A DNA stretch of 64,000 bases from Epithemia pelagica (lineage: Eukaryota > Protista > Bacillariophyta). The position numbers were made by a program, and so were the translations under genes. Numbering within the stretch: position 1 is the stretch's first letter; each line of letters starts with the position of its first letter. The stretch is from the NCBI GenBank assembly GCA_946965045.2, contig OX337228.1:124001-188000 (forward strand), given 5' to 3'. Positions 5,979-26,753 of this stretch are shown here, one piece after another. A model generated the notes under the pieces. It did not search any database. It was given only the letters and a program-made list of their open reading frames with translations, and was not told the DNA's origin.

Positions 5979-8900
5979 ATGTCGTCCCCTGTTGTACCAT
6001 TGGCGGCAAATGACAGCGCCCCCAAACCAATGGATACGAGTATGGACGTAGAGAATTCGGCAGCCAGGATCCTCCAAGAAGAAGATTCCAACCCAATCAT
6101 ATCGAGCGATGCGGTATCTCCGGTCACTGTGGCACAGGTGCATCCTGTAATGGCAGAGGATGATGAGAAAATGGCGGAGGACCATGAACAAGCGGTCGAC
6201 CATGAAACACGTGATGAGACGACCACGCCATCGTCCCTCAATGATGTGTATCAGGCTCTGGGTTCCCTCGACTCGGAAGGATGCGCTTGCACAGGAGGTT
6301 TAGCTACAGAGTTGCCATCCATGCCCGGGTTGGTTGTAGAGGGAGTGGGAAAAGTCAAGCTACCGATTGATCCAGAAATTGCTTCCAAACTCCAATCCGT
6401 ATCCAGTGGCCTATGCTATCAAGAAGTGGGTGACATTTTGGTTCCAGTCGAGGCTACTGACGCTGACATGACTCAAATCGATGCCAAAAAAGTAACCGTT
6501 ACGAATCCTACCTGGTCGACAGGAATTAGAGCCCTGACGAAAAGGGTTTGTACTGCTCTCGGGGTCGACCCGGATCTAGTGCGAATGGAGCTATCCAATC
6601 TCTTGTTGAATCAAGAGAGCGACTGTTCGAAAAAGCATCGAGATTTGAAAAAGATGGATGGAAAGTTTGCATCCCTGATGGTACAACTACCAAGCCACTT
6701 TACGGGAGGGTCCTTTGGAGTGACTTACAATGGCAACACCAAGACGTTTTCCATGCAAGATCCGGAAACATGTCCATTTAGCTGCCAATTTGTGGCACAT
6801 TATGCCGATTGTGAGCATGCGATTTTGCCCATTGAGTCGGGCCATCAGCTCGTGCTTGTTTATTCTCTCTGTTATATTGGTAGCGAATCTTCCAAACCGT
6901 CCCTGACCAATGTCAAAGAAGGTTCATTGGGGTCGGTGATGCAGAAATTGGACCAGGGTCAATCTCTTTTCGCCATCCCCATTGATCACCAGTATGAATC
7001 TATGGCACTGGCACAACATGGAGTCGATGCTCTAAAGGGCAAGGATCGATGTCTGGCTCGGACGATTGTTCGAGCAGAGGGGTGGGACATTGTGATTGTT
7101 AAGGCCGATGGATTGGACATGAATTCCAACTTTCCTGGGATGATTTTCTTTAGAGAACTATTTGACCCAAATGGAAGAGATGCAAAATCTCATCAAAAAT
7201 GGCTAGAAAAGGAACTTAGCTTTTGGTTGCTGAAGAAGGGAGGCAGCGTGTTGGCCAATGAGGATGAAGCCAAGGCTATGTGTGAAGTCGAAGACTCGAC
7301 GGATCCGACCCACTATTCATATCGTACGTGCATTTTGATCGCCTTTTCCACACATGCGGTCTTTGAGCAAGTTTGTCGCTCCGATTTCTCCAAGGCAGTG
7401 GAAGAAGTTCAAAAGAATCCAAACCTTTTTGACCGTGTATTGGAGTTCATGAAAACGTCAAAGCCAATCCTGTACTCCAAGAATTTTCTCATCCTCTACT
7501 CTTTGATGGAAGGAAAGAGCATGTTTTGGTCATCATTGGATGCAATGATGGAGGGACTGTCAAAAAATAAACGAGAAGTACCATCCTTCCAAGTAATTTC
7601 CATCCTTGCCACCTTGATAAAGGAAAATGGGTGGAACGACGAGAAGATAGCTCCTATACGTTTTTATCTCGAAGAGGTTACAGAACCTTCAAGAATGAAT
7701 GATTGCATGGACCTCTTGACATTGATAGAGCACTTTCTCACCATCAAGAAAGTGGTACATAATGAGAAGACAGTACTGGAAACGTTGATCGAACAGACAG
7801 TTCACAATTTTGACAAGAGATCAAGATATTCGGTTGATGGTTCAATCTCTCCTTCACGTAGAGGCGAGATTTACAAGCGTCTTGAATCACTGGCCCTATG
7901 CCATGGATACGCAAGCATTTCATCTGCTGCCAAGGCATGCTTTGTTCGAATCCGTGAGGTCGACAACATGAAGACGTGGAACTACCTACCTTGGGCGATT
8001 GAAACGGAGACGCTGCTGCCGACTTTGGTCGAGCAAATGGAAGCTGTAGAATCCATGCATACCAATGTCGCTGGCGCTAAACTGGATACCAGTCTAGAGG
8101 AATCGATACTCGATGCCTTTTCCGGTATGGTGAAGCACGACTTATTTTGCCGAATCAGTTTTTCAAAGGAGCTTCCTACCATTCACGCTTTTCTGAAGAA
8201 TCACTCCTCCTATTGGTCAACCTTCAACGCTATGTTGCAAGAAAGCAAGTGGAAATGGAAACTCCCATGCTCGTCGTTCACTTCCATACTAGCTTCCGTT
8301 ATACAGGAACATGGATGGGACGACGAAAAGATGGGTTCAGTCCGGCTTGTTTTGGAACAGCTTCCTGACATCGCACAAAAATGCGATTGCATTGAATTCT
8401 TGGAGTTGATTGAGCGACTGCTGTTATTAAAGACAACTCTGGGAGATAAGGCACCGATTGATTCCCTGATAGAACGGACCATCGAAAATTTTGACATGGA
8501 CGATTTTGACATGGACGATGCTGAGGAGGGAAGAGGTGGAGCGTCAAGTAAAACCAGAAAGGCCATTTATAGTTTGATTGAAAGGCGAGTCAAGGTACAT
8601 GGATGGGAGCGTCTAGCTGCTGCTGTCGACTCCTGCGTTGTCAGAACCCACAAACTTGTTCCTTGCGATGAGGATGCGTGGCTTGAGATCTTTCTGGAGC
8701 AGATTGATTGGGTGAAATCACTTCGTGCCAATAAACGTCTCGAGACATCCATTGTGGATTCGTTGGAGGGAGTTGTCCACAGAGAGATTTTGGATTCGTT
8801 GGAGGGAGTGACGTGGAACTACAGTCAGACGAAACTTACTTCCTCAGATCGCTTCACCACCCTTCACTCATATTTCAAGCACGACATCACTTACTGGAAT

Positions 8901-10136
8901 TTTTTCGAGGAAATTCTCGAAAGGTTGGATAATGAATCCAAACCACCGCCTTGTAATCTCACATCGATCTTAGCATCCACCATACAGGAACGCGGGTGGC
9001 TCGATTACAAGGTGGCTCCGATCCGTCAATTTCTGGAACAACTTGCTGAAAAAGGAAGCAACGTCAATTGTATTGATTTCTTGACCTTTCTCGGGGTCTT
9101 GTTCTCGCTCAGGAAATTGCTGGAGCTCCGGGCGCCAATTCAGTCTCTGATTGGAGATATGATCTGTAATTTCGAATGGCAAACAGAACAAGGACAATTG
9201 CCCCGAATGTACTTCACGAATGAAAATCCAAAACAGATTTACAAGCGGCTTGAAACGCTGGGGGGATCTGACGCTCGCGATATATCACGTGTCATAAATG
9301 CATGCTTTGTCCGAATTCGTAAAATCAACGAAAGGAAAACCATTTTTGAGCATATGAACGACCAGATTAAAGCGATTGAGTCAATTGCTACTCATGTTGC
9401 GGACATAGAGACAGACTATCTTCGAGAACCTATATTCAGAGGGTTTGTGAGTTCTCTCACGAGCGGTGGTTTTGGGGAGGCCTCCGAAATTCAAAGAATG
9501 TTAGAGAAACTGGTCATGCACGGCACCGCTGAGATGTTTGGAGATGTGAAAACCTGGGCAAGCACAGCCTCGTCCTCAAGGCTAAGGGTACTCGACTCGG
9601 CATTCCAAAAGCTGTCGTCTACGAGTCACAACGTGTCGAATGCAGATGTCATTGAAGAGTGTATAACGTATGTGCGTACTCGGGCCCGCCAACAGAAAGT
9701 TACTAAGTTGAAAAATCAAGAGAGACAGCTGATTTCTTTGACTGAAGATGGCCCTCCAGTGTTTTCTTGGAGAATACCTAGCGCGAACACAGGCAACGAT
9801 AGTTTGGACGCTTTTCTCCAAAGCTCTCGACCAGGTCCTTTAACAATATGTGTGGGAGGAGGAATAGGCCATGCCAGGAGTGTGGCACGTAATGGCTCAA
9901 TCATGTCCCAAGACTATGCCGACGAGATTGGTGTGTATCTATTTGAAAGTCAGGAGAGAGGCAACCGCGCATCTGTAATGGTGTTCAAAACAAAGAGACT
10001 GCACGATACCCAGCTTGCGAGATACGAGTCGAATGTTGAAAAGCTTGCCAACGTGTGCGCTCAACTGGAAAGACTGGGTCGTCGTCCCCGTGAGCGAGCG
10101 GAAGAAGAGCCTCCCACGAAACGTTCTAAAGTATAG
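5979..10136 (+). CDS. 2OG-Fe(II) dioxygenase-like/helical-repeat paralog 2 (1385 aa), partly degenerate active site
   Basis: KKHRD...QLPSHFTGG...HYADCEH...SGHQLVLVYSL: HxD and distal H are kept, the 2OG-binding Arg is Gln. Three helical units; FSW...DAFL...VGGG...A(S)V C-terminal domain; PPTKRSK NLS. Confidence 0.9.
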   Translation: MSSPVVPLAANDSAPKPMDTSMDVENSAARILQEEDSNPIISSDAVSPVTVAQVHPVMAEDDEKMAEDHEQAVDHETRDETTTPSSLNDVYQALGSLDSEGCACTGGLATELPSMPGLVVEGVGKVKLPIDPEIASKLQSVSSGLCYQEVGDILVPVEATDADMTQIDAKKVTVTNPTWSTGIRALTKRVCTALGVDPDLVRMELSNLLLNQESDCSKKHRDLKKMDGKFASLMVQLPSHFTGGSFGVTYNGNTKTFSMQDPETCPFSCQFVAHYADCEHAILPIESGHQLVLVYSLCYIGSESSKPSLTNVKEGSLGSVMQKLDQGQSLFAIPIDHQYESMALAQHGVDALKGKDRCLARTIVRAEGWDIVIVKADGLDMNSNFPGMIFFRELFDPNGRDAKSHQKWLEKELSFWLLKKGGSVLANEDEAKAMCEVEDSTDPTHYSYRTCILIAFSTHAVFEQVCRSDFSKAVEEVQKNPNLFDRVLEFMKTSKPILYSKNFLILYSLMEGKSMFWSSLDAMMEGLSKNKREVPSFQVISILATLIKENGWNDEKIAPIRFYLEEVTEPSRMNDCMDLLTLIEHFLTIKKVVHNEKTVLETLIEQTVHNFDKRSRYSVDGSISPSRRGEIYKRLESLALCHGYASISSAAKACFVRIREVDNMKTWNYLPWAIETETLLPTLVEQMEAVESMHTNVAGAKLDTSLEESILDAFSGMVKHDLFCRISFSKELPTIHAFLKNHSSYWSTFNAMLQESKWKWKLPCSSFTSILASVIQEHGWDDEKMGSVRLVLEQLPDIAQKCDCIEFLELIERLLLLKTTLGDKAPIDSLIERTIENFDMDDFDMDDAEEGRGGASSKTRKAIYSLIERRVKVHGWERLAAAVDSCVVRTHKLVPCDEDAWLEIFLEQIDWVKSLRANKRLETSIVDSLEGVVHREILDSLEGVTWNYSQTKLTSSDRFTTLHSYFKHDITYWNFFEEILERLDNESKPPPCNLTSILASTIQERGWLDYKVAPIRQFLEQLAEKGSNVNCIDFLTFLGVLFSLRKLLELRAPIQSLIGDMICNFEWQTEQGQLPRMYFTNENPKQIYKRLETLGGSDARDISRVINACFVRIRKINERKTIFEHMNDQIKAIESIATHVADIETDYLREPIFRGFVSSLTSGGFGEASEIQRMLEKLVMHGTAEMFGDVKTWASTASSSRLRVLDSAFQKLSSTSHNVSNADVIEECITYVRTRARQQKVTKLKNQERQLISLTEDGPPVFSWRIPSANTGNDSLDAFLQSSRPGPLTICVGGGIGHARSVARNGSIMSQDYADEIGVYLFESQERGNRASVMVFKTKRLHDTQLARYESNVEKLANVCAQLERLGRRPRERAEEEPPTKRSKV

Positions 10137-10950: not shown

Positions 10951-13900
10951 ATGTCGAATGTACAGGCATCTGTGGTCCCATTGGCGGCAGATGACACTGG
11001 TCAACAGGCAATTGATACGAGTATGGAAATCGAACCGTCCAAGAATTCGGCACTCAAGATCATCCAAGAAGAAGAGTCGAACCCAATCGTCTCGAGCGAT
11101 GAGGCTTCTCCTGTTGCTGTAGCGCGGGTACGCCCTACTTCTAGGATTGAGAATGATGAGGAAATGGACCAAGCAGACGACAAACAAGAAACAGAAGAAA
11201 AAACGACGACAACCTCTCTCATTGATGTGTACCAAGCATTGGATTCTCTCGACTCGGAAGGATGCGCTTGGACAGGAGGCTTGGCCACAGAGCTGCCCTC
11301 CATGCCAGGGTTGATTGTAGAAGGAGTGGGAGAAGTCAAGTTACCGCTGGATCAAGACACTGCCACCAAACTCAAAACAACGTCCAGTAACATGCTCTTT
11401 CAAGCGGCGGGTGACATTTTGGAAGCTACTGACGCTGACGTGGCTCAAATCGATGCCGATAAGGTTACTTTGACCAATCCAGCCTGGTTTGCTGGCTTGA
11501 AAGCCCTCACGAAAAAGGTTTGTGCGGCTCTCGGAGTCGATCCGGAGCTAGTACGAACTGAGCTATCCAGCCTTTTGTTGAATCTAGAAGGAGACTGTTC
11601 CAGAAAGCATCGAGACTTGAAGAAGGCAGATGGAAAGTTTGCATCCTTGATGATCCAACTACCAAGTCGCTTCACGGGAGGGTCCTTTGCAGTGACTCAT
11701 GACGGTAACACAAAGACATTTACCATGCATGATCCTGAAACATGTCCATTTAGCTGTCGTTATGTAGCACATTATGCCGATTGTGAGCATGAGATTTTGC
11801 CCATTGAGTCGGGTCATCAACTCGCCCTGGTCTATTCTCTCTGTTATACGGATGACGATTGTTCCAAACCGTCGCTTGCCAATGTGCACGAAGGTTCGTT
11901 AGTATCAGTAATTGCGAAGTTGGACCGGAATCAATCTCTCTTTGCCATTCCCATTGATAAAGGATATGAGTCTTTGGCATTGGCGCGTCATGGAGTGAAT
12001 GTCCTCAAGGGAAAGGATCGATCTCTGGCTCGGACGATTGGTCGCGTCGAGGGGTGGCAACTCTTGATTGCTAAGGTGGAAGGAAGCGGCTCACATCGGA
12101 GAGACGTTGGAAACATTTCCTGCAAAGAATTGTTTCACCAAGATGGAAGCGATGCGCAAGCGCATCAAACCTGGCTCGACAACGATCTCTGTTTGGATTC
12201 GATAACGAAGGGAGGCAGTTTATTAGCTGTTGGGGACAGAGCGAAGTACGTGTGGAATCTCCAAGACTCGAGAGATCGGTATAGCTACATCAACAGGTAT
12301 TCAACGTCCATTTTGATTGCATTTTCCGAGAACTCAGTCTTTGAGAGAATTTGCCGTTCGGATTTCTCGAAAGCTCTGGAGGAACTTTCCAGAACTCCCA
12401 TCCATATGGACCGTGCCTTGAAGTTCATGGCGGAGTCAACACCGATCCTTAACTCAGCAGATTTTGTCACCCTCCACTCCTTGCTGAAAGAGAAGGACTC
12501 ATTTTGGTCGTCGTTGAATGCGATGATGCAGGGACTGTCTAATAAGAGTAGACGGGGCATGTCTACAAACAGACGTGAAGTCTCCAAAGGTGAACGTGAA
12601 GTGCCTTCCTCCACTGTGATTTCAATTCTGACCTCATTGATAAAAGAACATGGATGGGACGATGAAAAAATAACTCCTATCCGTCTCTTTCTGGAGCAGC
12701 TTGCTGATATTGACAGGCAAACCGATTGCATGGAATTCTTGTCCGTGATGGAGCACTTTCTTACAATCAAGAAAGTGCTACAGAATAAGGATATCATGGA
12801 CACTTTGGTGGAAAAGACGATTGATAATTTTGCCAAGGGCACTGGAACCACGGATTCAAGCTTGCGCTATAGTGACATTGCTCCCAGGAACAGAGGCGAA
12901 ATTTACAAGCGCCTTGAATCAATGTCCCAAACACATGGATACGAGAGCATATCATCTGCTGTCCAGGCATGCTTTGTACGAATCCAAACAATGAACAAGT
13001 CTGAGACGGAGAGGCTGCTTCCGACGTTAGTAGAGCAGATTGCAGCTGTAGAATCCATACATACCAATGTCCCGGACGCGAAACTGGATACCACTCTTCA
13101 TGAGTCCATACTGGATACGTTTGCTAGCTTCATCAAGAACGATTATGGTTCCCGAGGAATCAGTTCCTCACAGGAGTTTCCGACGATTCACTCTTTTCTG
13201 AAGAATCACGCCTCATATTGGCCATCCTTCAACGTTATTTTGAAGCGCATGCACAAAACACTCCCTGGCTCTTCCTTGACTTCTATCTTAGCTTCTGTGA
13301 TAAAGGAACACGGATGGGACGACGAAAAGATGGCTCCAGTTCGGGACTTTCTTGAAACGCTTCCTGACAGGGCAGAAGCATGTAATTGCTTTGTCTTCTT
13401 GAATTTGTTGGAGCCACTGCTCGTGTTGAAGAGAACTTTGGGAGATAAGGCACCGATTGATTCCCTGATAGAACGGACCATTAAAAATTTTGACATGGAG
13501 GAGGGAAGAGGTCGAGTGTCAAGTAAAACCAGAAAGGAGATTTATAGTTTGCTTGAAAAGCGAGTCAAGGAGCATGGATGGGAGATTCTAGCTGCTGCTG
13601 TCGACTCCTGCGTTGTCAGAACCCACAAACTTGTTCCTTGCGATGAGGAGGCGTGGCTCGAGATCTATATCGAACAGATTGATTGGGTGAAATCGCTTCG
13701 TGCCAACAAACGTCTCGAGACATCCATTGTGGATTCGTTTGAGGGAGTGGTGGAAGAAAACATTGTCGGTTCGTTTGAGGGAGTGGCTTCGAACTACTGT
13801 GCTCATATACTTACTTCCTCAGCTCGTTTTACTTCCCTTCATTCTTATTGCAAGAACAATTCCAGTTACTGGAGTTCATTCGAGATGATTCTGGAAGACT

Positions 13901-18732: not shown

Positions 18733-18765
18733 TACAAGCTGGCTCACATTTCGTAGTGCATGAGT
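18733..18765 (+). repeat. left TA + terminal inverted repeat (TA CAAGCTGGCTCACATTTCGTAGTGCATGAGT)
   Basis: Reverse complement matches 25695-25727 at 32/33 positions. Confidence 0.9.
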
Positions 18766-18932
18766 ATATTAGTCTACAAGACTGTACTGAGAAAAAACTC
18801 GTACACAAAACTCCACAGTGGAAAATCCGCAGCAACCATGACAATGGGACGGCCCGATGTTTGGGCAAATACGATGGCATTCATGGCCTCAAACACTAGA
18901 ACTGCTGTTACTAATCGACTAAGTAGGTTCTA

Positions 18933-19439
18933 TTAGACATCTGCTGTGAAAAATAGGTTCTGGGTGGGGAACTTCGTCGTCATGTAGCCCAGAGCAGTCT
19001 TGAGCTCATTCATGTGGAAGAGGCTCATATAGATGGTCAGGACCATTGGGTCCATGCTGCTCTTGGTATCAATTGTGCAGCGTATATAGAATTGAATGCG
19101 GCCCTTCTTCTTGCTGGAGTCCGTGGGTGAAAGAACTTCCTTCATCACGGTCTTCACAATGAACCCAACTGGCAGCACGAGCAGCGGGTCAGCGAACTCA
19201 GATCGCGCTTCCCTTTTGTAGAAAGCCAACCGAAGATAGTCGGTGCTTGTCTCGCGTTGGAGGAGAGCATGCCCACGGTCCACAACATTTCTTCCATTTC
19301 GTTCTTCCTTGTCATCAACAATGTCCGACACGAGAACATTCACCCTATCTGCGTAGAAACTTGTCCGAAAGTTGCACCGACTTTTGTCATTTTCAGGGCC
19401 GTCATGGTCCTTGTTGAAATAGAAGTCAATCTCCTCCAT
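18933..19439 (-). CDS. orphan 168-aa protein inside the transposon (weak RanBD/PH-like beta pattern)
   Basis: ATG ORF with globular composition, divergent from the 19680 gene; resemblance to a Ran-binding-domain fold is by eye only. Confidence 0.6.
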   Translation of the reverse strand: MEEIDFYFNKDHDGPENDKSRCNFRTSFYADRVNVLVSDIVDDKEERNGRNVVDRGHALLQRETSTDYLRLAFYKREARSEFADPLLVLPVGFIVKTVMKEVLSPTDSSKKKGRIQFYIRCTIDTKSSMDPMVLTIYMSLFHMNELKTALGYMTTKFPTQNLFFTADV

Positions 19440-19679
19440 GCTTGTCGATTGTGGAAAACTGTTAACTCTACGCCAAGTTGATTGTTAGATTCAAATCACT
19501 TTTGTTTCTTGTTTGCGTATCGTTTCCGGATGCATCCAAAATGTGGGCGCCACACGGGTTGGTCGGATCTTGGGCGCGCACCGCTTTCCGTTGGTCTATC
19601 CGTTGCTCTAAGTAGGTTGATCGAGTTTGGTCTTGTCCGAGCATGCACATTCCCACATGCCATCCAACCAACACACAGC

Positions 19680-20654
19680 ATGGCGAGTTCTGTGAGTGTG
19701 TCTCACAAAAAACAAAGGATGAGCAGCAACAGCAACCATCGCTACCCAAGTCGTACCCGCACGAAAACGGCAATCTTCCTGGAGGACATCCAGGAAGAAG
19801 CTGCTGTTACTCCAGGGAAGCCTTCTCGAGGAGGAAGGGCATCGGCAACGAAGCTCCCTCCGAAGAAGAGCTCCGGAAAGAAGAATGCCAGGAAAAAACG
19901 CCGGACGAAGAAGACAAATCCCGAGGAGCTCCCCCCACCCCAGTCTCCAGAGTTTGTTATTTCCAAGGTGGTTGGGGAGACTCCGGACAACAGCGGGGTT
20001 GACAAGAAGCTGGCAGGAGGAGGAATGAACGACGCTGTGGTATTGGTGCCGGCGGCCAGCAGTGACGCAGAGAAGAGGTTCGAGACTGCGCTCAAGGAAG
20101 CAACGCAGTGGCATCTCATCCTTGGTGATGCCAATGGAGCGACAACACTTATGATTGGTAGAAACTATCAAGGCACGGGTAAGAAAGTCTCCATTGGAGA
20201 GATCGTGGAAACGCTCCGGCAAACCGAGAGCAGCCATAATCCCAGAATTGACAAAACAGTCAACAACAATGGTAAGTTGAACGTGGACTCTTTGCAATTG
20301 AAATGAGCTTGTACTGACCTCGTATTGTTTTCAGGACAGGATGGAATGATGGTAACCAGCACTCCCTTGAAGAAGGAGGACGATTCGATCGCTGAGGCGG
20401 AGACTGTTGCAAAATCCAATGTGGATTGGCAATACATGACGCCAGGTGAAAAGCACGCACACAATCGACGTGAGGCGGAGAAGACTGTGCAGTTCATGCC
20501 TGGAAGTCGTGCATTTGAGCCGCAGCACAAAAGCCCGAGTCTCTTTTGCGAGGATGCTTCGGATGACGACGCAGCAACTTACAATTCACACGTAGATGAT
20601 GGATTTGAAGATACGCAGGAAAATAGTTTTAGTCAGGAGTATTACAAGATCTAG
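19680..20654 (+). CDS. orphan ~303-aa basic/NLS-bearing protein inside the transposon; two exons (19680-20271, 20335-20654)
   Basis: Donor G|GTAAGT at 20272, branch-like TACTGAC at ~20312, acceptor TTTTCAG| at 20334. The 63-nt intron removes the stop at 20306 and joins ORFs 19482-20306 and 20325-20654 in frame. KKNARKKRRTKK cluster. Confidence 0.7.
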
Positions 20655-20725
20655 TTACATATAAGAAACCATATCTAAATATTGAAGAATTGCTGTTGTT
20701 TACCGCTACTGCTGCCTTAGTTCTT

Positions 20726-21829
20726 CTACTCATCTTCGTCGTCATCTGAATCCTCATCGTCCTCGTCATCCAAATCCTCATCATCCTCGTCATCCGAATT
20801 CTCTTGTTCTTCATCATCCAAATCCTCATCATCCAAATCCTCATCTTCGTCGTCATCGTTGCCATCATCATCTTCTTCGTTGTGGTCGCCATCCGAATCT
20901 TCAGAAGTGTTGTCGTGTTCATCCTGGCGTCCTGCCCTCATGCCCGACACCAGATTGTAGCACCAGAAGATTTCTTCATTCTTCTTGATGTTTCGTCTCG
21001 CTGTCGCCTTGAGCTTCGTACTGACTTGGACATTATAACACTTGGCATCCGGGTCGACGGATTCGTTGGTCTTGTACTTCTCGTACTGTGGATCGTTTGC
21101 AAAGTGCAAACCCATCCAAAGGTCTGATGCAGATGGATCCACGAAGGCAAAAGGCCTTGTGCGCAGTTGAATAGCGTAAGCAGAAGGCGGACGGGACTTT
21201 TCCAAGACCTTCCCACAATAATATCCAAGCATTTCGCCTTTTTTGTAGGGCTTTGCTGCAAAAAGCCCAAGACGGGCGTTGTCCAAGGTTGATCGCTTGA
21301 TCACGAACAGATCTTCGTCGAGGTACCGAACAATGCACTCGTACTTTTGTGAATTGTCGTTTAGGTCCACCATCATTGTCCCCTCGATGAGTAGATTGTC
21401 CTTATGTTTCTTGTGCTTTCCAGTCCCTTTCTTCTTGTTGTACTTGCTGGGGGCGTAGTGCTTGACTGCTGTGCCAACAGGTTGGCCCTTGGTGTCGTGG
21501 CCCTTCCGCACCTGTGCACCTTGAATGTTCACGATCCCCTTGATGTGGGAGGAAATGAACCGATACATTTCGATTCTTTCCTCCAAAGTGTCATTACCGA
21601 ACAGTACTTCTAGCTTGGCCATCAGATTTTCTGCCTTCACTGCCCGTGGAGTTCTTGTTGTCGCGATCTTTTTTTTCGCTTGTTCTTTCTGGTTGAGCTC
21701 ATCCATCTTGTATTTTCGATTTTGCTGCTTGCGAGGAAGCTTTGAAGGACGATACATTGCTGCTTTTGCTCCTTTTGTCTTGGAGCGTGTCTGTCGCTGG
21801 GTTGCGGATCGTGTCTGTCGCTTTCCCAT
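20726..21829 (-). CDS. SET-domain protein (putative lysine methyltransferase) with basic N-terminus and acidic C-terminal tail
   Basis: RLGLFAAKPYKKGEMLGYYCG, HFANDP and ARRNIKKNEEIFWCY match SET motifs I-IV; no Cys-rich pre/post-SET; first ATG of the basic region at 21829; D/E-rich last ~50 aa. Confidence 0.88.
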   Translation of the reverse strand: MGKRQTRSATQRQTRSKTKGAKAAMYRPSKLPRKQQNRKYKMDELNQKEQAKKKIATTRTPRAVKAENLMAKLEVLFGNDTLEERIEMYRFISSHIKGIVNIQGAQVRKGHDTKGQPVGTAVKHYAPSKYNKKKGTGKHKKHKDNLLIEGTMMVDLNDNSQKYECIVRYLDEDLFVIKRSTLDNARLGLFAAKPYKKGEMLGYYCGKVLEKSRPPSAYAIQLRTRPFAFVDPSASDLWMGLHFANDPQYEKYKTNESVDPDAKCYNVQVSTKLKATARRNIKKNEEIFWCYNLVSGMRAGRQDEHDNTSEDSDGDHNEEDDDGNDDDEDEDLDDEDLDDEEQENSDDEDDEDLDDEDDEDSDDDEDE

Positions 21830-22191
21830 GGTCGTTGCAAGCTGCTGCACTTTTTGCTGGGCTGCCGAAAAACTCTGGGACCGCTGCACTTTATGAAAGG
21901 GATCTTTGGGGGGTAGAAGGCGCAGAAATGCCCCTTTTCAGCTTCCGAATGAGTGTGGTGTTGAGTGAAAACCGCATTGACAGTAATCAGACTGTCGTTT
22001 GTACAATGTGGATCAGACTACTTGTCACCCTTTCACCAATGAACTTCGCAGACCCTCGGGGGTTCAAAAAAAAAGGATTTCATTTTCTCACAAAATCTGG
22101 GAAGATGAAACAGGGAGAGGTCCTTGTGCATGACAACGTACAAGTATGAAAGCTCTAAGGTACGTAAACACTTTGAATTATAATATTAATT

Positions 22192-25100
22192 TCAGCGTTC
22201 AGCTTCTTGTGCCTCCTTCCAGACTTGCTGGATGAAGGAATGCTCTTGATCCAGCGTACAACGGTGAGTCTTCATACTTACATTCACATACTTCTCAATT
22301 TCTACAAACAGGATGTCATTCGTTGTGCCCTGGTTCTTCTTGTCAAACAACTGATAGGTGAGCATATACCGCCCTGCTTTAGCGGAGAACTTGCGTACCG
22401 TGCTCAATGTCACTTTGCCAATACTCGTTCTCACCACTTCCATGAACTTTGTCTTCGTTGCTTTCTTGCTCTTCGTCAAGCGACGGAAGTATCGCTTTCC
22501 AAGACCCCATGCGTACTCGATCCCTTCACCCGCAAGTTCGCAGTGGTACTTCGGTGTCACAAGGATCTCAAGATTGCGAGAATATCGCTTTGAGAGATCA
22601 ACCGCCAGTTGTTCGAGGGCGGATCTCTCGTTCTTGAAGTCCTCACATGATCCCATCAGGTAAGTCAATGAGTATTTCTTGTATTCTTCCATCATGTCAT
22701 CGCGGACCTGTCCTGAACCATCCAACCATGTCTTACTCACATCCTTGCGGTATTCCTGGAGCTTGGTGGTGTCAATGAAACCACGCTCGCCCAGAACTTG
22801 GAAGAGACCCTTTGGTTGCCCGAGCCAGCCCTGCTCCATGACAACTCGGTCTACCTCGGTTGGTAGCTTCCTTGCTGTCGAAATTGCCTGGAGCTGGTCA
22901 AGGGATTTGGAATGGTAGGCTTGAAGTGCCCTGTCGCCATGTTGAGCTCCTTGTTGAATGTCATTTCGAATGAGCTCACCAATCAATTCTTTCTTGGACA
23001 GCTTGTGTTTCTTTGTTTGATTGGTTGGGTGGTCGAACTTCATTCGTTGTCGTTGCTCCTCCGTCAGAGGAACACCCTTAGAAGCAAATGGGCCAGGGTC
23101 CTCATCTGTGTAGACCATGGACTGCTTGGACCCTGGCTGAAGACGATGAGGGTGTGGATATGGACCAATGGACTCAACAATGGTCTCATGCATCCTGGGT
23201 ACAACTCCACCCCAATCCTTGTTCATCGTTTTCTCGTTGAGCCCATCTTTCTGTTTTCGTCCGTGGCCACTACTGTTGTCAAAAAGAAAAACAAAATCAA
23301 AAGATGGGTACAGGATCATCAAACAATCAACCAAGTCCTCGAACTGGAGGGCCATGTGGTCGTAGTTCCACCAGCCATCATTGTTGGATCCATAGTCAAA
23401 AAACGTGCAAAACGCGCTGGCATCGGTGATCTGCCGGAGCCGCTTGTGCGTGCCACCAAGGACTTGTTTGGCAGAGTCATCGGCCAAGTAGGTCTGTTGC
23501 CTACGGGATTGATTAATTGCATCAATCTTCTCGGGCGTGAGCAGGACAACTTCGCCTGCGTTGTCCAAATAGAAGCCCCATGCCCGACTCACAAATGCGC
23601 TGAGCATGAGTCCATGCCCATCGTCTTTTGGCAAAAGGACTCCACGCCCTTGATGGTCCCCCCAACTCTTCTTTGAGAAAGACCATTGCTTGAAAATGGC
23701 CTCATCTTGGCCAACAAGGACAACAGGACGACGGTCCGATGGGAAACGATGCGACAAATTTCCTCCCAGCAGCTTGTTTTCATCTTTGACATAGGATGAA
23801 AACACCTCGGGAAAACAATCAACGTGATACTCCCGCATTTGTTGATTGGTTGTTGGGTCTTCAAACTCAAAGGCCCAAACGTCCTCCATGAGCTTTTCTG
23901 ACACACCCTCAATCTCCCCGTGTTCCAGTTTGATTGCTTGGGTAGCAGGTATCTGGACCCACCGATGTGCGAGCTTCTCCAGCTCGAAGTAAGTGGAAAT
24001 GAACTGCTTCCGGGCGGCGATATTTTCCGGATCTTCGTGGCGGTCCGTGTAATAGGACTTTTTGGTTTCAGAAAATCGAAAACCAGCATAATTCAGCATC
24101 TTCCATGCTGTACTTACAGAAACACTGGGGAGATTCACTTTTTGGCGGAACTCATCCAAGGTTAGCAGCCCTGTGATGGATGGCTCCCCGTCCTGGCTCT
24201 CCGTGTCTATCTCTTTCTGATACACCACGGGGATCAAAGTATCCCGGATGTACGTGGCGGCCGTCTCGCAGGAAAGGGTCTCCAGACGTTGACTGGCCCA
24301 CTTCTGCAACAACTGGAGTGCTTCTGGGTATTGTCCCAGAAAGTATGGACATGGCTTCTTCCCTATCTGGATGTACCAGTTTGGATGGGGGAAGTTGCCA
24401 TTGACCCGGAATGCAACATTGGCTCGTTGCACAGTCCGCCAATGCTGCAGACAGCGATACGACATTTGACTCTGGTCGGTTGCATATTTGCAACACGACG
24501 TCCATGTGGCACCATCCTCCATTGTTTGGAGAGCTCGTTGATATGCCAGCCTAAGAACCCTCATTCTCATGAGCATTCTTGGGATCTGGGAGTCTTGGGG
24601 TGGCTCATCTTCACCCTTGTTGATGAGAGACAAAAAACAATCAAACCGTTGTTCCGCCAATTCAAGTGACTCAATCCACCGTTCCAGCTTCTTTCTCGTT
24701 GTCTCCCCATTCACTCTCGGACCAAAGATTTTGCTCACAACGGGCCGGTCGAAGAAATCTACGGCAGAAGAGTCACTGGAGGCATTGGAATGCTCATTGT
24801 TGTTGTTGTTTCCATTGTCGTTTCCTGTGCCTGCGGTTGTTGTTGTGGTGGTGGTTTCCAGTGCCTCTTCCAAAATCTGCTCTGGGCTTGGTGGTGATGA
24901 CGCTGCCGTTGTGGCAGTTTCATCATCATCCTTGATTGGTGTTGTGGGTTTCTTGCGTTTGTTCCTCCCTCCAATTCGAATCCGATTGTGACTTATGAAG
25001 TTAAGCCACTCCACATTCGTGTGGTTGAATTGAGGTGGTGGATCGGTCTGACGAGCCGAAACATAGTAGAATATTTGTTTCCCACCTCGACGTCGCACCT

Positions 25101-25347
25101 TGTGGCGGTAGATACCCTTGGGATTCCACTCTTGCGATAGGAAATGGAGTCGCCATTCACTACCTGAGCGCATTAAAGATCGATTCATCATTGTTACGTC
25201 GGATAATTCCGGAATCCACTGCTTCAAGAAGACGGCAATCTCAGCGTCAATAATCCACCGGTTTGTCCAGAGGAAGCGTATTGGATGGCATCTGAAGCCA
25301 AATTCGTCGCATATGGTTGTGTATGGCCCTGTATATGATTGAACCAT
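22192..25347 (-). CDS. DDE transposase, IS630/Tc1/mariner-type with long insertion
   Basis: VSVSTAWKMLNYAGF...KKSYYTDRHED (HTH-like end), LVGQDE (D1), FLFDNSSGH (D2), PKYHCELAGEGIEYAWG (IS630-like P-x-Y-x-x-E-L-x-x-x-x-I-E-x-x-W, catalytic E); ~1050 uninterrupted codons from ATG 25347. Confidence 0.85.
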   Translation of the reverse strand: MVQSYTGPYTTICDEFGFRCHPIRFLWTNRWIIDAEIAVFLKQWIPELSDVTMMNRSLMRSGSEWRLHFLSQEWNPKGIYRHKVRRRGGKQIFYYVSARQTDPPPQFNHTNVEWLNFISHNRIRIGGRNKRKKPTTPIKDDDETATTAASSPPSPEQILEEALETTTTTTTAGTGNDNGNNNNNEHSNASSDSSAVDFFDRPVVSKIFGPRVNGETTRKKLERWIESLELAEQRFDCFLSLINKGEDEPPQDSQIPRMLMRMRVLRLAYQRALQTMEDGATWTSCCKYATDQSQMSYRCLQHWRTVQRANVAFRVNGNFPHPNWYIQIGKKPCPYFLGQYPEALQLLQKWASQRLETLSCETAATYIRDTLIPVVYQKEIDTESQDGEPSITGLLTLDEFRQKVNLPSVSVSTAWKMLNYAGFRFSETKKSYYTDRHEDPENIAARKQFISTYFELEKLAHRWVQIPATQAIKLEHGEIEGVSEKLMEDVWAFEFEDPTTNQQMREYHVDCFPEVFSSYVKDENKLLGGNLSHRFPSDRRPVVLVGQDEAIFKQWSFSKKSWGDHQGRGVLLPKDDGHGLMLSAFVSRAWGFYLDNAGEVVLLTPEKIDAINQSRRQQTYLADDSAKQVLGGTHKRLRQITDASAFCTFFDYGSNNDGWWNYDHMALQFEDLVDCLMILYPSFDFVFLFDNSSGHGRKQKDGLNEKTMNKDWGGVVPRMHETIVESIGPYPHPHRLQPGSKQSMVYTDEDPGPFASKGVPLTEEQRQRMKFDHPTNQTKKHKLSKKELIGELIRNDIQQGAQHGDRALQAYHSKSLDQLQAISTARKLPTEVDRVVMEQGWLGQPKGLFQVLGERGFIDTTKLQEYRKDVSKTWLDGSGQVRDDMMEEYKKYSLTYLMGSCEDFKNERSALEQLAVDLSKRYSRNLEILVTPKYHCELAGEGIEYAWGLGKRYFRRLTKSKKATKTKFMEVVRTSIGKVTLSTVRKFSAKAGRYMLTYQLFDKKNQGTTNDILFVEIEKYVNVSMKTHRCTLDQEHSFIQQVWKEAQEAER

Positions 25348-25694
25348 TTTGTCTGTTCGGGCACAGGCAGAGAGATGGAGGATGAGGGGACTGCCCACGA
25401 TGTTCGACAGTAGCTACTTTCACTGCTCCTGGAGACTGAACCACAGGTCGAAATGCGCGACACCCCTATGATTTTCTACTACTTTTATATCTATCCTATC
25501 GATTAGGTTGGGTGGTGTTTCGCATTTCGACCGGCGAATGGCCATCGTCGCATGAAGCGGTCACTAGTCGTTATTGCATTTTGCATTTTTCAATATGTGC
25601 GTGACAAAATGTGAGGAACACGAAAACCGTAAGTGATCCGAAACGCTGGGGCACTGTGGGCTAAAGTGTAGTATACAATTTCCCGCTATGAAAA

Positions 25695-25727
25695 ACTCAT
25701 GCACTACGAAACGTGAGCCAGCTTGTA
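25695..25727 (-). repeat. right terminal inverted repeat + TA
   Basis: ACTCATGCACTACGAAACGTGAGCCAGCTTG TA, inverted copy of 18733-18765. Confidence 0.9.
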
Positions 25728-26753
25728 GAGCATGCGCAGCCGTTGGAATAGAATAGGAACAAATCGGCAAATCTGTGCTGTTCCATGAAAATGGCTCTGC
25801 AGCGCGGGGAATAAACCTGGAACAAATTTAAATCTGAGTTATTCTTCCTTGTTTTTGGCACAGATACCACGAATCTGTGCCCTGTTTTCTCCAGCAGAAA
25901 GTTGGAGCATACGAGTCTTGGAACATGAGTCACGAGACATGCTGTCCATATGTACAATCTGAATCTACATTATTATGATACCAATGCACGCGCGTCAGCA
26001 ACGTGACAGGATGACGGGCGTGACTTCAAACCGCTACATGCAAGCCAATGTCACGGGCGCGCCAAAACTTCTATTTTTTTGTTCCATTTTTGCTGCATTT
26101 TTGTTTTTTACGGCTGCACAGATTTGATCAAACGTACGAAAAACGACGCAAGACGTCCATTATGGGAATAAGACTGCGTAAGTCACGCACATTTGTTCTA
26201 ATTTTGTTCCAACGGCTGCGCATGCTCTTACTTTTGTTTTGGCCTTTCCCTGTAGTCGCAATGCAAACGACTACAAGAACGATGAACCATAACCATGCAG
26301 TGTAGATTTTAACATTGCAGAAAGCATGACGATTCGTTGTTGCCGTCGTTCTTTGGTTGCTTCTAAGCGCCTTGAACTGCGTGGCCTGTTCGCATGCGCG
26401 CACAATGCCCCGGAACCGGTCGCGCCGGCTCGGTCGGAGAGATTCAATCTCTTCACTCGTTTCCGCATCGATCACGTATTTTGCACATTCCCACGGCGAT
26501 ATGGGTAATCACTTTGGATTGTGGAGCAAACCTATAACCAATGGACAGGTAAGTTAGTCCACAACAGCTCGCGCCAACCGTCAACTCAGTGAAAACGACT
26601 CAACCTCACGGCTCGTTTCCACATCCACCAGGAGTCTGCACCTTCTAATGAGTCTGTTGCACTCATAAATTTCGTCAAGCTACGAACTGCATCTTGAAGA
26701 ACATTTTATGGTCACACTGTTAAAGCGTTGGGATCCGTTGACATCTGAATTCG

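Follow-up and report, generated by a model that had tools for sequence, protein, structure and literature searches.

The 64-kb stretch of Epithemia pelagica DNA analyzed here (the window) contains, at 18733-25727, an intact transposon copy with a terminal inverted repeat (TIR) and a TA dinucleotide at each end and four intact genes inside. A basic protein of 303 aa is encoded on the plus strand, whereas the other three genes occupy the minus strand. The features are as follows, in order of position:

18733-18734, no strand: first TA of the target-site duplication, outside the orf168-side TIR
18735-18765, plus strand: TIR of the orf168-side end, beginning CAAGCTGG, complementary at 30 of 31 positions to 25695-25725
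18933-19439, minus strand: orf168, gene for a conserved 168-aa protein with homologs in three other families
19440-19679, no strand: intergenic spacer separating the divergently oriented orf168 and 303-aa genes, a putative bidirectional promoter
19680-20271, plus strand: exon 1 of the gene for the 303-aa basic protein; the ATG at 19680 is also present in the L001 copy
20272-20334, plus strand: predicted 63-nt intron of the 303-aa gene, with a GTAAGT donor, a TACTGAC branch-like site, and a TTTCAG acceptor
20335-20654, plus strand: exon 2 of the 303-aa gene, with conserved motifs and including the stop (TAG, 20652-20654)
20726-21829, minus strand: gene for a SET-domain protein (Pfam SET), 367 aa from the first ATG
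22192-25347, minus strand: transposase gene, 1051 aa from the first ATG, with a DDE core and an AF2 fold match
22516-22518, minus strand: catalytic E961 of the transposase
23278-23280, minus strand: catalytic D707 of the transposase
23704-23706, minus strand: catalytic D565 of the transposase
25695-25725, minus strand: TIR of the transposase-side end, partner of 18735-18765
25726-25727, no strand: second TA of the target-site duplication, outside the transposase-side TIR

The TIRs are 31 nt long and start with CAAGCTG, a terminus common to the four families described below; their pattern occurs at just two places within the 64 kb, with none expected from shuffled sequences. Homology with the L001 and L017 copies of the same assembly breaks off exactly at the orf168-side TIR (18735). 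A TA is seen on either side of 13 of the 13 full-length insertions examined, usually in the context (C/G)TA(G), and a single TA is present in the uninterrupted repeat unit beside the L012 copy, which is a paralogous unit and not an empty allele. An earlier sequence-only reading of the window had given the coordinates, the 31-bp TIR length, the TA flanks, and the protein sizes, all of them correctly, with the 303 aa being exact after splicing.

The predicted intron of the 303-aa gene holds an in-frame TGA; the sequencing runs found were DNA assemblies, and none was RNA-Seq. In the L001 copy it contains 3- and 5-nt indels, with a change of frame across the intron, and in the L002 copy the segment is absent and the gene is one uninterrupted ORF. 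Exon 1 encodes an S/TPxK-like and KKRR-rich stretch, and exon 2 carries the conserved motifs W..MTPGEKHA and DDGFEDTQ..FSQEYY. Direct checks of the opposite-strand orientation covered the L002-type and 9.7-kb families, where the homologs (L002 and L011) have the same relative strand; the gene calls of L016 and L017 agree with this placement. Upstream of the gene, parts of the region at ~19520-19630 are >90% identical to the L001 subfamily and include a 1-nt indel, which points to conservation without coding. The neighboring orf168 has homologs at the same position in the three other families (86%, 63%, and 41% identity) and no match in Pfam, NCBIfam, or PDB. The Atlas alone offers a weak C2-like lead for it (score 0.82).

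Copies, families and selection

Several relatives of the element are found in the same assembly. A sibling, L017, is 98.9% identical and full length to the TIRs. A sister subfamily comprises five copies (L001, L004, and L006-L008; L005 is one and the same locus as L001) that are 99.5-100% identical; the last four match L001 at 99.5-99.9% along 6975 bp, and the host context differs for each. The L001 element is 83% identical to that of the window over its full length and ends exactly at the TIRs. More distant are an 11.5-kb relative, L002, and a sister family of 9.73 kb (L011-L015). Near-identical copies occupy unrelated loci. The earlier description of an autonomous DNA transposon is supported, and the element looks autonomous and has been active recently.

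All four genes are present in all four families (the window, L001, L002, and L011-L015 types) in unchanged order, even though their transposases have diverged down to about 40% identity. Each of the full-length copies examined, like the three other families, has the SET gene and both orphan genes inside its TIRs; for the SET gene, this placement is seen in the window element, L017, L001, L004, L006-L008, L002, and L011-L015. The 25 variants of the transposase cluster and the 15 variants of the SET cluster fall on contigs of the same lengths, and in the phylogeny the SET-bearing families form a single clade (support 96/93). Within this genome, none of the three observations that the sequence-only reading had named as contradicting it was made: SET and orphan genes as single-copy syntenic host genes outside any TIR context, other transposase copies lacking them, or a TIR pair missing from the ends of other copies. 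In Fragilaria, in Nitzschia, and on two environmental contigs, loci of related transposases have no SET or orf168 gene nearby, and profile scans of JGI metagenome contigs recovered no relatives of SET or orf168. Thus, the cargo is so far known from a single genome.

Purifying selection acts on all four genes between the window and L001 subfamilies. The dN/dS values, with bootstrap CIs, are 0.14 for the transposase (0.11-0.18), 0.12 for orf168 (0.07-0.21), 0.24 for the SET gene (0.17-0.34), and 0.34 for the spliced coding sequence of the 303-aa gene (0.24-0.47). The most constrained part of the SET protein is the SET domain itself (0.16), and exon 2 of the 303-aa gene alone gives 0.19. Given this range of 0.12-0.34 between subfamilies, the cargo is a long-standing component that the element has maintained. 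The SET gene, the 303-aa gene, and orf168 are therefore not chance passengers and are very probably maintained by selection for the element.

Transposase and class of the element

The N-terminal part of the transposase is helical and winged-helix-like, and it is followed by an RNase H-like DDE core. The catalytic residues D565, D707, and E961 are invariant among 37 transposase homologs, and the core motifs read GQDE, FDNSSGH, and PKYHCELAGEGIEYAW. Between the first and second aspartates lie 141 residues and between D707 and E961 lie 253, the latter gap being filled by a conserved insert of ~250 aa with invariant W858, K863, G864, Q867, R872, and G873. The AF2 model of the protein (pLDDT 80) is matched by VIA-align to Metnase (Z 14.0), Mos1 (13.7), and Sleeping Beauty (12.3), and the next class after the Tc1/mariner catalytic domains is that of the retroviral integrases (Z 8.4). 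Foldseek searches of AFDB recovered "Tc1-like transposase DDE domain" proteins with E-values of about 1e-22 to 1e-8 (best 3.5e-22), and the Atlas matches are to DDE_3/IS630. On the other hand, the window transposase has no match in Pfam or NCBIfam, and none of the 37 homologs matches the Pfam DDE families (DDE_3, Transposase_1, or DDE_1) at E-values up to 1.

These observations bear on whether the element might instead be placed in a different DDE superfamily that makes 2-bp duplications, such as ISL2EU/PHIS or Mirage/CMC. The absence of a Pfam DDE_3 or Transposase_1 match and the long insertion between the second aspartate and the glutamate would favor such a placement, as hAT or CMC-type enzymes more typically have insertions of this kind. 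However, the four best matches among solved structures are without exception catalytic domains of Tc1/mariner enzymes and rank far above other proteins of the RNase H fold, the AFDB and Atlas neighbors bear Tc1-like, DDE_3, or IS630 labels, and the DE, DNxxxH, and P.(Y/S)..(D/E)L...E..W motifs fit the Tc1/mariner signature. Accordingly, we regard a different superfamily as very improbable; the element is almost certainly of the Tc1/mariner type (IS630/Tc1/mariner), in a very divergent branch. Like Mos1, Sleeping Beauty, and the transposase domain of SETMAR/Metnase, it combines the TA duplication and short TIRs with a DDE RNase H-like core. In contrast to these, its transposase is about three times larger, goes undetected by Pfam, and has a winged-helix-like N-terminus; the spacings of 141 (D1 to D2) and ~253 residues (D2 to E) compare with ~90 and 34 in Tc1/mariner enzymes. 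It also has three additional conserved genes; in classical members, the transposase is the only protein encoded. Classical Tc1/mariner families are defined by a short D-to-E spacing (such as DD34E, DD34D, or DD37E), and with 253 residues at this point the element is assigned to a divergent branch and to no named family. The earlier assignment to the Tc1/mariner type thus stands as regards fold, catalytic motifs, and TA targets, but does not extend to a canonical family.

The SET protein and the role of the cargo

The SET protein consists of a basic N-terminus, a conserved pre-SET region, the SET domain at residues ~170-295, and an acidic tail of ~65 aa. Pfam SET (PF00856) scores 33.5 bits (5.8e-8) on the window protein, above the cut-off of 22.4, and 25-27 bits on the proteins of the 9.7-kb sister family. 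The nearest Atlas clusters are likewise SET (score 0.96), and in PDB the SET profile is matched best by the EZH2 SET domain (E 0.002) and by PRDM PR domains. The AF2 model of this protein, with a pLDDT of 35, is unusable. The sequence search for relatives of the SET protein found them in the E. pelagica genome only. Canonical SET domains carry the motifs GxG, YxG, NH(S/C)xxPN, and ELxF/YDY, the last with the catalytic tyrosine. In the window protein, the motifs read RLGLFA, YYCGK, HFANDP, and EEIFWCY; H242, N245, and D246 (the H-N-D core) and Y291 are invariant across the four families. In all four, the NH motif reads ND, with the asparagine kept and the histidine replaced by aspartate. In the window copy, arginine takes the place of the first motif I glycine, and the sister family reads GAGFGVFA. 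The L002 SET, the single copy of its type examined, is probably defective or mis-modelled because its N-terminal GxG/motif I segment is absent.

The chances that the SET protein is catalytically active are about even. A catalytically dead or non-canonical domain, serving for example as a binding scaffold in the manner of some PR/SET (PRDM) domains, is possible though doubtful: the altered NH(S/C) and motif I positions, the weak PRDM2_PR matches in the sister family, and the distance to the closest PDB sequences speak for it, but the YxG motif, the asparagine of the NH motif, and the tyrosine of EE(I/L)F..Y are retained, the SET domain is under the strongest constraint in the protein, and the Pfam score exceeds the gathering threshold. 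A separate question is whom the cargo serves. DNA transposons do capture host genes, and the confinement of SET relatives to a single genome could be taken to indicate that the SET gene and the two other genes were passively trapped in a Pack-type or composite event and are functionless for the element. Against this stand the identical gene order in four families with transposases ~40% identical, the purifying selection, the fall of SET and orf168 identities in step with that of the transposase, and the lack of any TIR-free syntenic host copy among the cluster members; we consider passive trapping extremely improbable. The three extra proteins might also be transposition cofactors, with roles in the transpososome, nuclear import, or target choice, rather than chromatin anti-silencing tools; the substrate of the SET protein may then be the transposase or a repair factor and not histones. 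Harbinger elements, for instance, have a Myb-like second protein as a transposition cofactor. The constant association of the four genes is consistent with such roles, as are the conservation of orf168 at about the level of the transposase (41-44% versus 42% identity to the 9.7-kb family; dN/dS 0.12 versus 0.14) and the NLS-like KKRRTKK of the 303-aa protein, together with its S/TPxK-type motifs typical of DNA-binding tails. Nevertheless, the related transposases of other diatoms apparently do without these genes nearby, and SET proteins have no known tie to transposition chemistry; we view a cofactor role as a tentative and somewhat unlikely alternative.

The reading that we prefer, with a probability of about 0.75, is that of an intact, recently active, four-gene cut-and-paste element whose cargo, in a general sense, serves the element; this figure does not extend to the anti-silencing mechanism. 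The transposase would bind the TIRs via its N-terminal winged-helix/helical part, excise the element, and insert it at TA, and the three accessory proteins would work on its behalf. The SET protein would most likely act on a chromatin protein located at the element or close by, methylating one of that protein's lysines; the basic 303-aa protein, with its S/TPxK-type motifs, may help tether the SET protein to DNA. Together, the accessory proteins could allow the element to remain expressible or mobile, for instance by countering repressive chromatin. An anti-silencing role specifically is a speculative and rather unlikely proposal, with a functional analogy in the DNA transposons whose VANC or TET/JBP genes can act on epigenetic marks.

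Several known systems share parts of this organization. SETMAR (Metnase) of primates also brings SET and mariner-type transposase functions together, but there a pre-existing SET gene and a domesticated Hsmar1 transposase were joined into a single ORF, yielding an immobile host gene. In contrast, the present element is mobile and multi-copy, and its SET and transposase genes are unfused, separate ORFs with 362 bp between them (21829 to 22192), as the sequence-only reading had noted. The anti-silencing protein VANC of the Arabidopsis VANDAL elements and the fungal TET/JBP dioxygenases resemble the SET protein in being products of DNA transposon genes able to act on epigenetic marks, although theirs is DNA demethylation or hypomethylation and that of the SET protein putative protein-lysine methylation. 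Among these epigenetic modifiers, VANC alone has experimental support. The TET/JBP genes are carried by fungal DNA transposons (PMC12730594). SET cargo itself is already reported from the Harbinger, MuDR, and Helentron elements of oomycetes, and the premise that such cargo has no precedent would be too strong: Kojima and Jurka (Repbase Reports 2014), cited by PMC12730594, report SET genes for Phytophthora HarbingerS and MuDR elements, and proto-Helentron-Pi carries a Clr4-like SET ORF with 50% similarity (PMC4067079). Like the diatom element, these are stramenopile transposons with a separate SET gene as cargo. However, they belong to the PIF/Harbinger, Mutator, and rolling-circle classes; unlike the Clr4-like SET of the proto-Helentron, that of the diatom element has no close relative (best PDB E 0.002), and it is accompanied by two further conserved genes. 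Additional ORFs are also borne by the TBE elements of Oxytricha, which, like the diatom element, have more than one conserved gene, although their accessory genes are unrelated, include no SET gene, and reside in a ciliate host. The TBE elements belong to the Tc1/mariner family (10.1101/2025.03.17.643836).

The bounded element and its copies

The transposon in the window is real, sharply bounded, and biologically interesting. Its two terminal inverted repeats (TIRs) form a pattern that occurs nowhere else in the window (0 occurrences expected from shuffles), a TA lies immediately external to each of them, and four genes are located between them. The sequence-only reading of this stretch as a TIR-bounded, TA-flanked element with four genes is thereby borne out.

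Features of the window element (window positions)
18735-18765: TIR at the orf168-side end, 31 nt, 30/31 complementary to its partner
18933-19439, minus strand: orf168, an ORF of 168 aa
between orf168 and SET, plus strand: 303-aa gene, a predicted spliced gene with its ATG at 19680
20726-21829, minus strand: SET ORF, 367 aa counted from the first ATG
22192-25347, minus strand: transposase ORF, 1051 aa counted from the first ATG
25695-25725: TIR at the transposase-side end, 31 nt, 30/31 complementary to its partner

There is strong support for the mobility of this element as a TIR-bounded cut-and-paste unit whose Tc1/mariner-like DDE enzyme inserts it at TA. All loci compared with it come from the ENA assembly ERZ21939226, in which the window itself lies on ctg1325l. 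Further copies with the same four-gene layout, which the earlier reading had proposed to look for, are indeed present, both close to the window copy and in more distant families. A full-length sibling (L017) is 98.9% identical to it and has all four genes intact. The element at locus L001 is 83% identical over its full length, with the alignment ending exactly at the TIRs; four other loci (L004, L006, L007, and L008) carry 6975-bp elements that are 99.5-99.9% identical to that of L001, each in different host-gene surroundings, while L005 and L001 are one locus. More distant are an 11.5-kb relative (L002) with perfect 30-nt TIRs and a 9.73-kb sister family represented by five copies (L011-L015) that are at least 99.95% identical. 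One copy (L018) is 5'-truncated, and its junction is also seen as a loose end at window position 20642 in independent sequencing runs. By cluster membership, the transposase has 25 variants and SET has 15 at a threshold of at least 90% identity, and the two sets lie on contigs whose lengths coincide.

The element termini all begin TA|CAAGCTG, and TA is present on both sides in 13 of 13 full-length insertions, the flanks being otherwise unrelated; the reconstructed targets show a preference for (C/G)TA(G). The copy at L012 sits in a short tandem repeat whose adjacent uninterrupted unit reads ggggcc-TA-gaa, and the single TA in this unit supports duplication of the TA rather than its being part of the element. 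The empty TA site that the earlier reading had proposed to look for is represented only by this paralogous repeat unit, and no empty allele was found among the loci of ERZ21939226 examined. The exact host protein flanking the window element was found solely on the window's own contig, which offers no empty-site counterpart there. At L006, a 1.57-kb direct duplication (519-2091 and 11321-12877, 95.7% identical) with a spermine-synthase gene lies on either side of the transposon copy; these duplicated flanks do not cover the insertion point and hence provide no empty site.

The window and L001 subfamilies resemble each other in a mosaic fashion: identity is 94-100% over the first ~1 kb (window 24727-25727 against L001 9621-10620), which covers the 5' end and the N-terminus of the transposase, and again in a block at ~22730-23130, in comparison to 62-90% elsewhere. 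In these alignments, the pattern suggests recombination or gene conversion between the two subfamilies. The three TIR differences between them are mirrored at both ends. In the L002 relative, the transposase gene is separated from the 5' end by ~3 kb of additional sequence (7088-9600, element ~357-2800), which includes repeated poly-R/poly-F-coding low-complexity units, and another ~2 kb lies between the transposase and SET genes.

MITE-like units are also seen beside the transposons. One of ~500 bp occupies window 25727-26228, directly next to the TA of the transposase-side end; its 38-nt inverted ends match at 89% and begin GAGCATGCGCAGCC, and it is the sole copy in the window. Another, of ~615 bp, has inverted ends of 64 nt (TAAGGGCTGGGTAAGCCGATCC...) and is found in only two of the first 16 loci examined (L002:18254-18867 and L013:19352-19950), at distances of 2 bp and ~15-17 bp from the orf168-side ends of transposons of two different families. 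This proximity could stem from local hopping or from a preference for TA/CTAG targets in common, or the unit may be a non-autonomous relative.

The transposase family and its predicted fold

The transposase recovered no usable match in Pfam, NCBIfam, or PDB sequence searches, either singly or as a 37-sequence profile, and a word-based search returned 59 matches, of which all the named ones are from diatoms. In the public protein library, the family spans 15,060 representative clusters at E ≤0.001 and 2,034 at E ≤1e-30. This is a very large transposase family that has no Pfam model and goes unrecognized by current domain libraries; therefore, annotation pipelines probably overlook such elements when applied to the genomes of diatoms and other stramenopiles.

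Across 37 aligned homologs, D565 (GQDE), D707 (FDNSSGH), and E961 (PKYHCELAGEGIEYAW) are invariant, a motif pattern that matches the Tc1/mariner signature. When the whole 1068-residue AlphaFold model (pLDDT 80) was compared with PDB using Foldseek, the match to Mos1 reached no better than E 0.19. VIA-align places the Metnase/SETMAR transposase domain first among solved structures (Z 14.0), ahead of two matches to Mos1 (13.7 and 13.4) and one to Sleeping Beauty (12.3), and the next structural class is that of the retroviral integrases (Z 8.4). In Foldseek searches against AFDB clusters, E-values ranged from 3.5e-22 to 1e-8 and most of the matched proteins bear the name "Tc1-like transposase DDE domain," and Atlas searches led to DDE_3/IS630. 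Judged by the predicted model, the core of the transposase is IS630/Tc1/mariner-like, given these matches to Metnase, Mos1, and Sleeping Beauty and those in AFDB and Atlas, and such a core agrees with the TA targets. The original Tc1/mariner-type assignment accordingly holds for fold, motifs, and target sites, but the enzyme falls outside every classical DD34E/DD34D-type family. The first and second catalytic residues have 141 residues between them and the second and third ~253, the latter interval being occupied by a conserved insert. N-terminal to the core, residues 24-140 of the model are winged-helix-like (Z 5-6 against winged-helix domains), and a helical region comes after them. A Tc1/mariner-type core with a ~250-aa insert between catalytic residues two and three broadens the known architecture of this superfamily.

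Accessory genes as part of the element

The interval between orf168 and SET is hard to interpret because long open frames run on both strands, and the coding strand of the middle gene was decided by comparison with two diverged copies. It is the plus strand of the window, opposite to the other three genes, with a dN/dS of 0.19 in the distal block and 0.55 in the proximal block; a reading on the transposase strand was rejected because dN/dS there is 0.79, versus 0.19-0.55 on the opposite strand. From the nucleotide alignment, positions 20272-20334 are predicted to be a 63-nt intron whose donor is GTAAGT and whose acceptor is TTTCAG, with TACTGAC as a branch-like site. The sole in-frame stop of the gene falls inside this intron, and the sister-copy indels within it have lengths that are not multiples of three. 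Predicted splicing from the ATG at 19680 gives exactly 303 aa, in agreement with the spliced protein of ~303 aa first proposed. In L002, the conserved C-terminal part of this protein lies in a single uninterrupted ORF. The basic 303-aa protein contains KKRRTKK and stretches of the S/TPxK type, the latter expanded to KTPxK repeats in the L001 version, and has an acidic conserved C-terminal motif.

The same gene order is retained in the distant relatives, and the identities of the cargo genes drop in parallel with that of the transposase. In L002, the transposase is 53-60% identical to that of the window, SET 38%, the 303-aa gene 41-45% (opposite strand), and orf168 62%; in the 9.73-kb family, the corresponding values are 42%, 34%, 34% (exon 2 homolog, opposite strand), and 44%. 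Between the window and L001 subfamilies (dS 0.38-0.68), the dN/dS of SET, an estimate also called for by the sequence-only reading, is well below 1, and that of the SET domain by itself is 0.16.

dN/dS between the window and L001 subfamilies, with bootstrap 95% CI
Transposase: 0.14 (0.11-0.18)
SET: 0.24 (0.17-0.34)
orf168: 0.12 (0.07-0.21)
303-aa gene: 0.34 (0.24-0.47)

From these comparisons of sequence, the cargo belongs to the element, and maintenance of the three accessory genes by selection on the element lineage is strongly supported; passive capture of host genes between TIRs is effectively excluded as an explanation. The conservation of orf168 equals that of the transposase, while Pfam and PDB searches with it recovered no relatives or domains, and Atlas gave only a weak C2-like lead.

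In the maximum-likelihood tree of transposases, every SET-bearing family falls in a single clade (support 96/93), with three environmental homologs (P0004, P0006, and P0008) branching just outside it. No SET or orf168 was found in the 1.7-1.8 kb of sequence downstream at the P0004 and P0008 loci or in the 10 kb on each side of the Fragilaria crotonensis and Nitzschia inconspicua loci, and degenerate-pattern scans of JGI metagenome contigs with SET and orf168 profiles recovered no relatives. The simplest reading is that the three-gene set was gained once, at the base of the SET-bearing clade. An older origin is possible, as the P0004 and P0008 contigs are short, extending just this 1.7-1.8 kb downstream.

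The SET protein and a possible chromatin module

The Pfam SET score of the SET protein exceeds the threshold, and its Atlas feature neighbors are SET clusters (0.96). A profile of the four families matches the Chaetomium EZH2 SET domain (E 0.002), followed by the PR domains of MECOM/PRDM and by LegAS4; word-based searches with the whole protein and with residues 60-300 matched this genome's own copies alone. The protein combines a basic N-terminus, a ~100-aa conserved region preceding the SET domain, and a ~65-aa acidic tail; an AF2 model from a 6-sequence alignment was unusable (pLDDT 35). Motif I, YxG, the Asn of the NH motif, and the tyrosine of the C-terminal EE(I/L)F..Y are present, while the His of the NH motif is replaced by Asp in every family and the window protein has R in place of the first Gly of motif I. 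Catalytic activity is plausible; a main rival is that SET acts as a non-catalytic module. The SET of L002 is without the segment carrying the GxG motif, and the SET of that copy may therefore be defective.

We infer that the three accessory proteins act on behalf of the element. In the favored scenario, SET would methylate a chromatin protein on the element or in its vicinity, possibly with the 303-aa basic protein as a tether, and this methylation would keep the element expressible or mobile. In its specific form, to which we assign roughly a one-in-four chance, SET, the S/TPxK-type basic protein, and orf168 would constitute a transposon-encoded chromatin module that marks histone lysines at the element or close to it, and the mark would either antagonize H3K9/H3K27-type silencing or guide integration. 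The other main rival is that all three are transposition cofactors. If the chromatin module is real, it would represent a self-contained "writer" anti-silencing system on a Tc1/mariner-like element.

To our knowledge, SET genes borne by transposable elements have been reported just in passing (oomycete Harbinger, MuDR, Helentron) and never tested. Those of the HarbingerS and MuDR families of Phytophthora are attributed to Kojima and Jurka (2014), as cited in PMC12730594, and proto-Helentron-Pi holds a Clr4-like SET ORF (PMC4067079). Thus, SET genes inside stramenopile transposons are already on record, and transposon-borne epigenetic modifiers are known from VANDAL and the fungal TET/JBP transposons (PMC12730594). 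Full-text literature searches, which did not extend to Repbase, turned up neither a description of the present diatom family nor one of a Tc1/mariner-type element carrying SET as cargo. This family is a clean case of an apparently active DNA transposon in which a chromatin-enzyme-like gene is kept under selection, and its intact near-identical copies with defined ends permit direct experiments in a diatom.

In the sister family, the SET-containing protein has 949 aa, in which Pfam detects SET only; were the chromatin module real, this length would reflect its elaboration in the sister family through an extended SET gene. An older 9.7-kb-type copy (L003:14940-18918) has instead a 404-aa SET ORF followed by 636-aa and 501-aa ORFs, as against the single 949-aa ORF of the recent copies, and cargo gene structure thus varies within the family. 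The 636-aa ORF shows a weak Crinkler N-terminal match (E 0.045).
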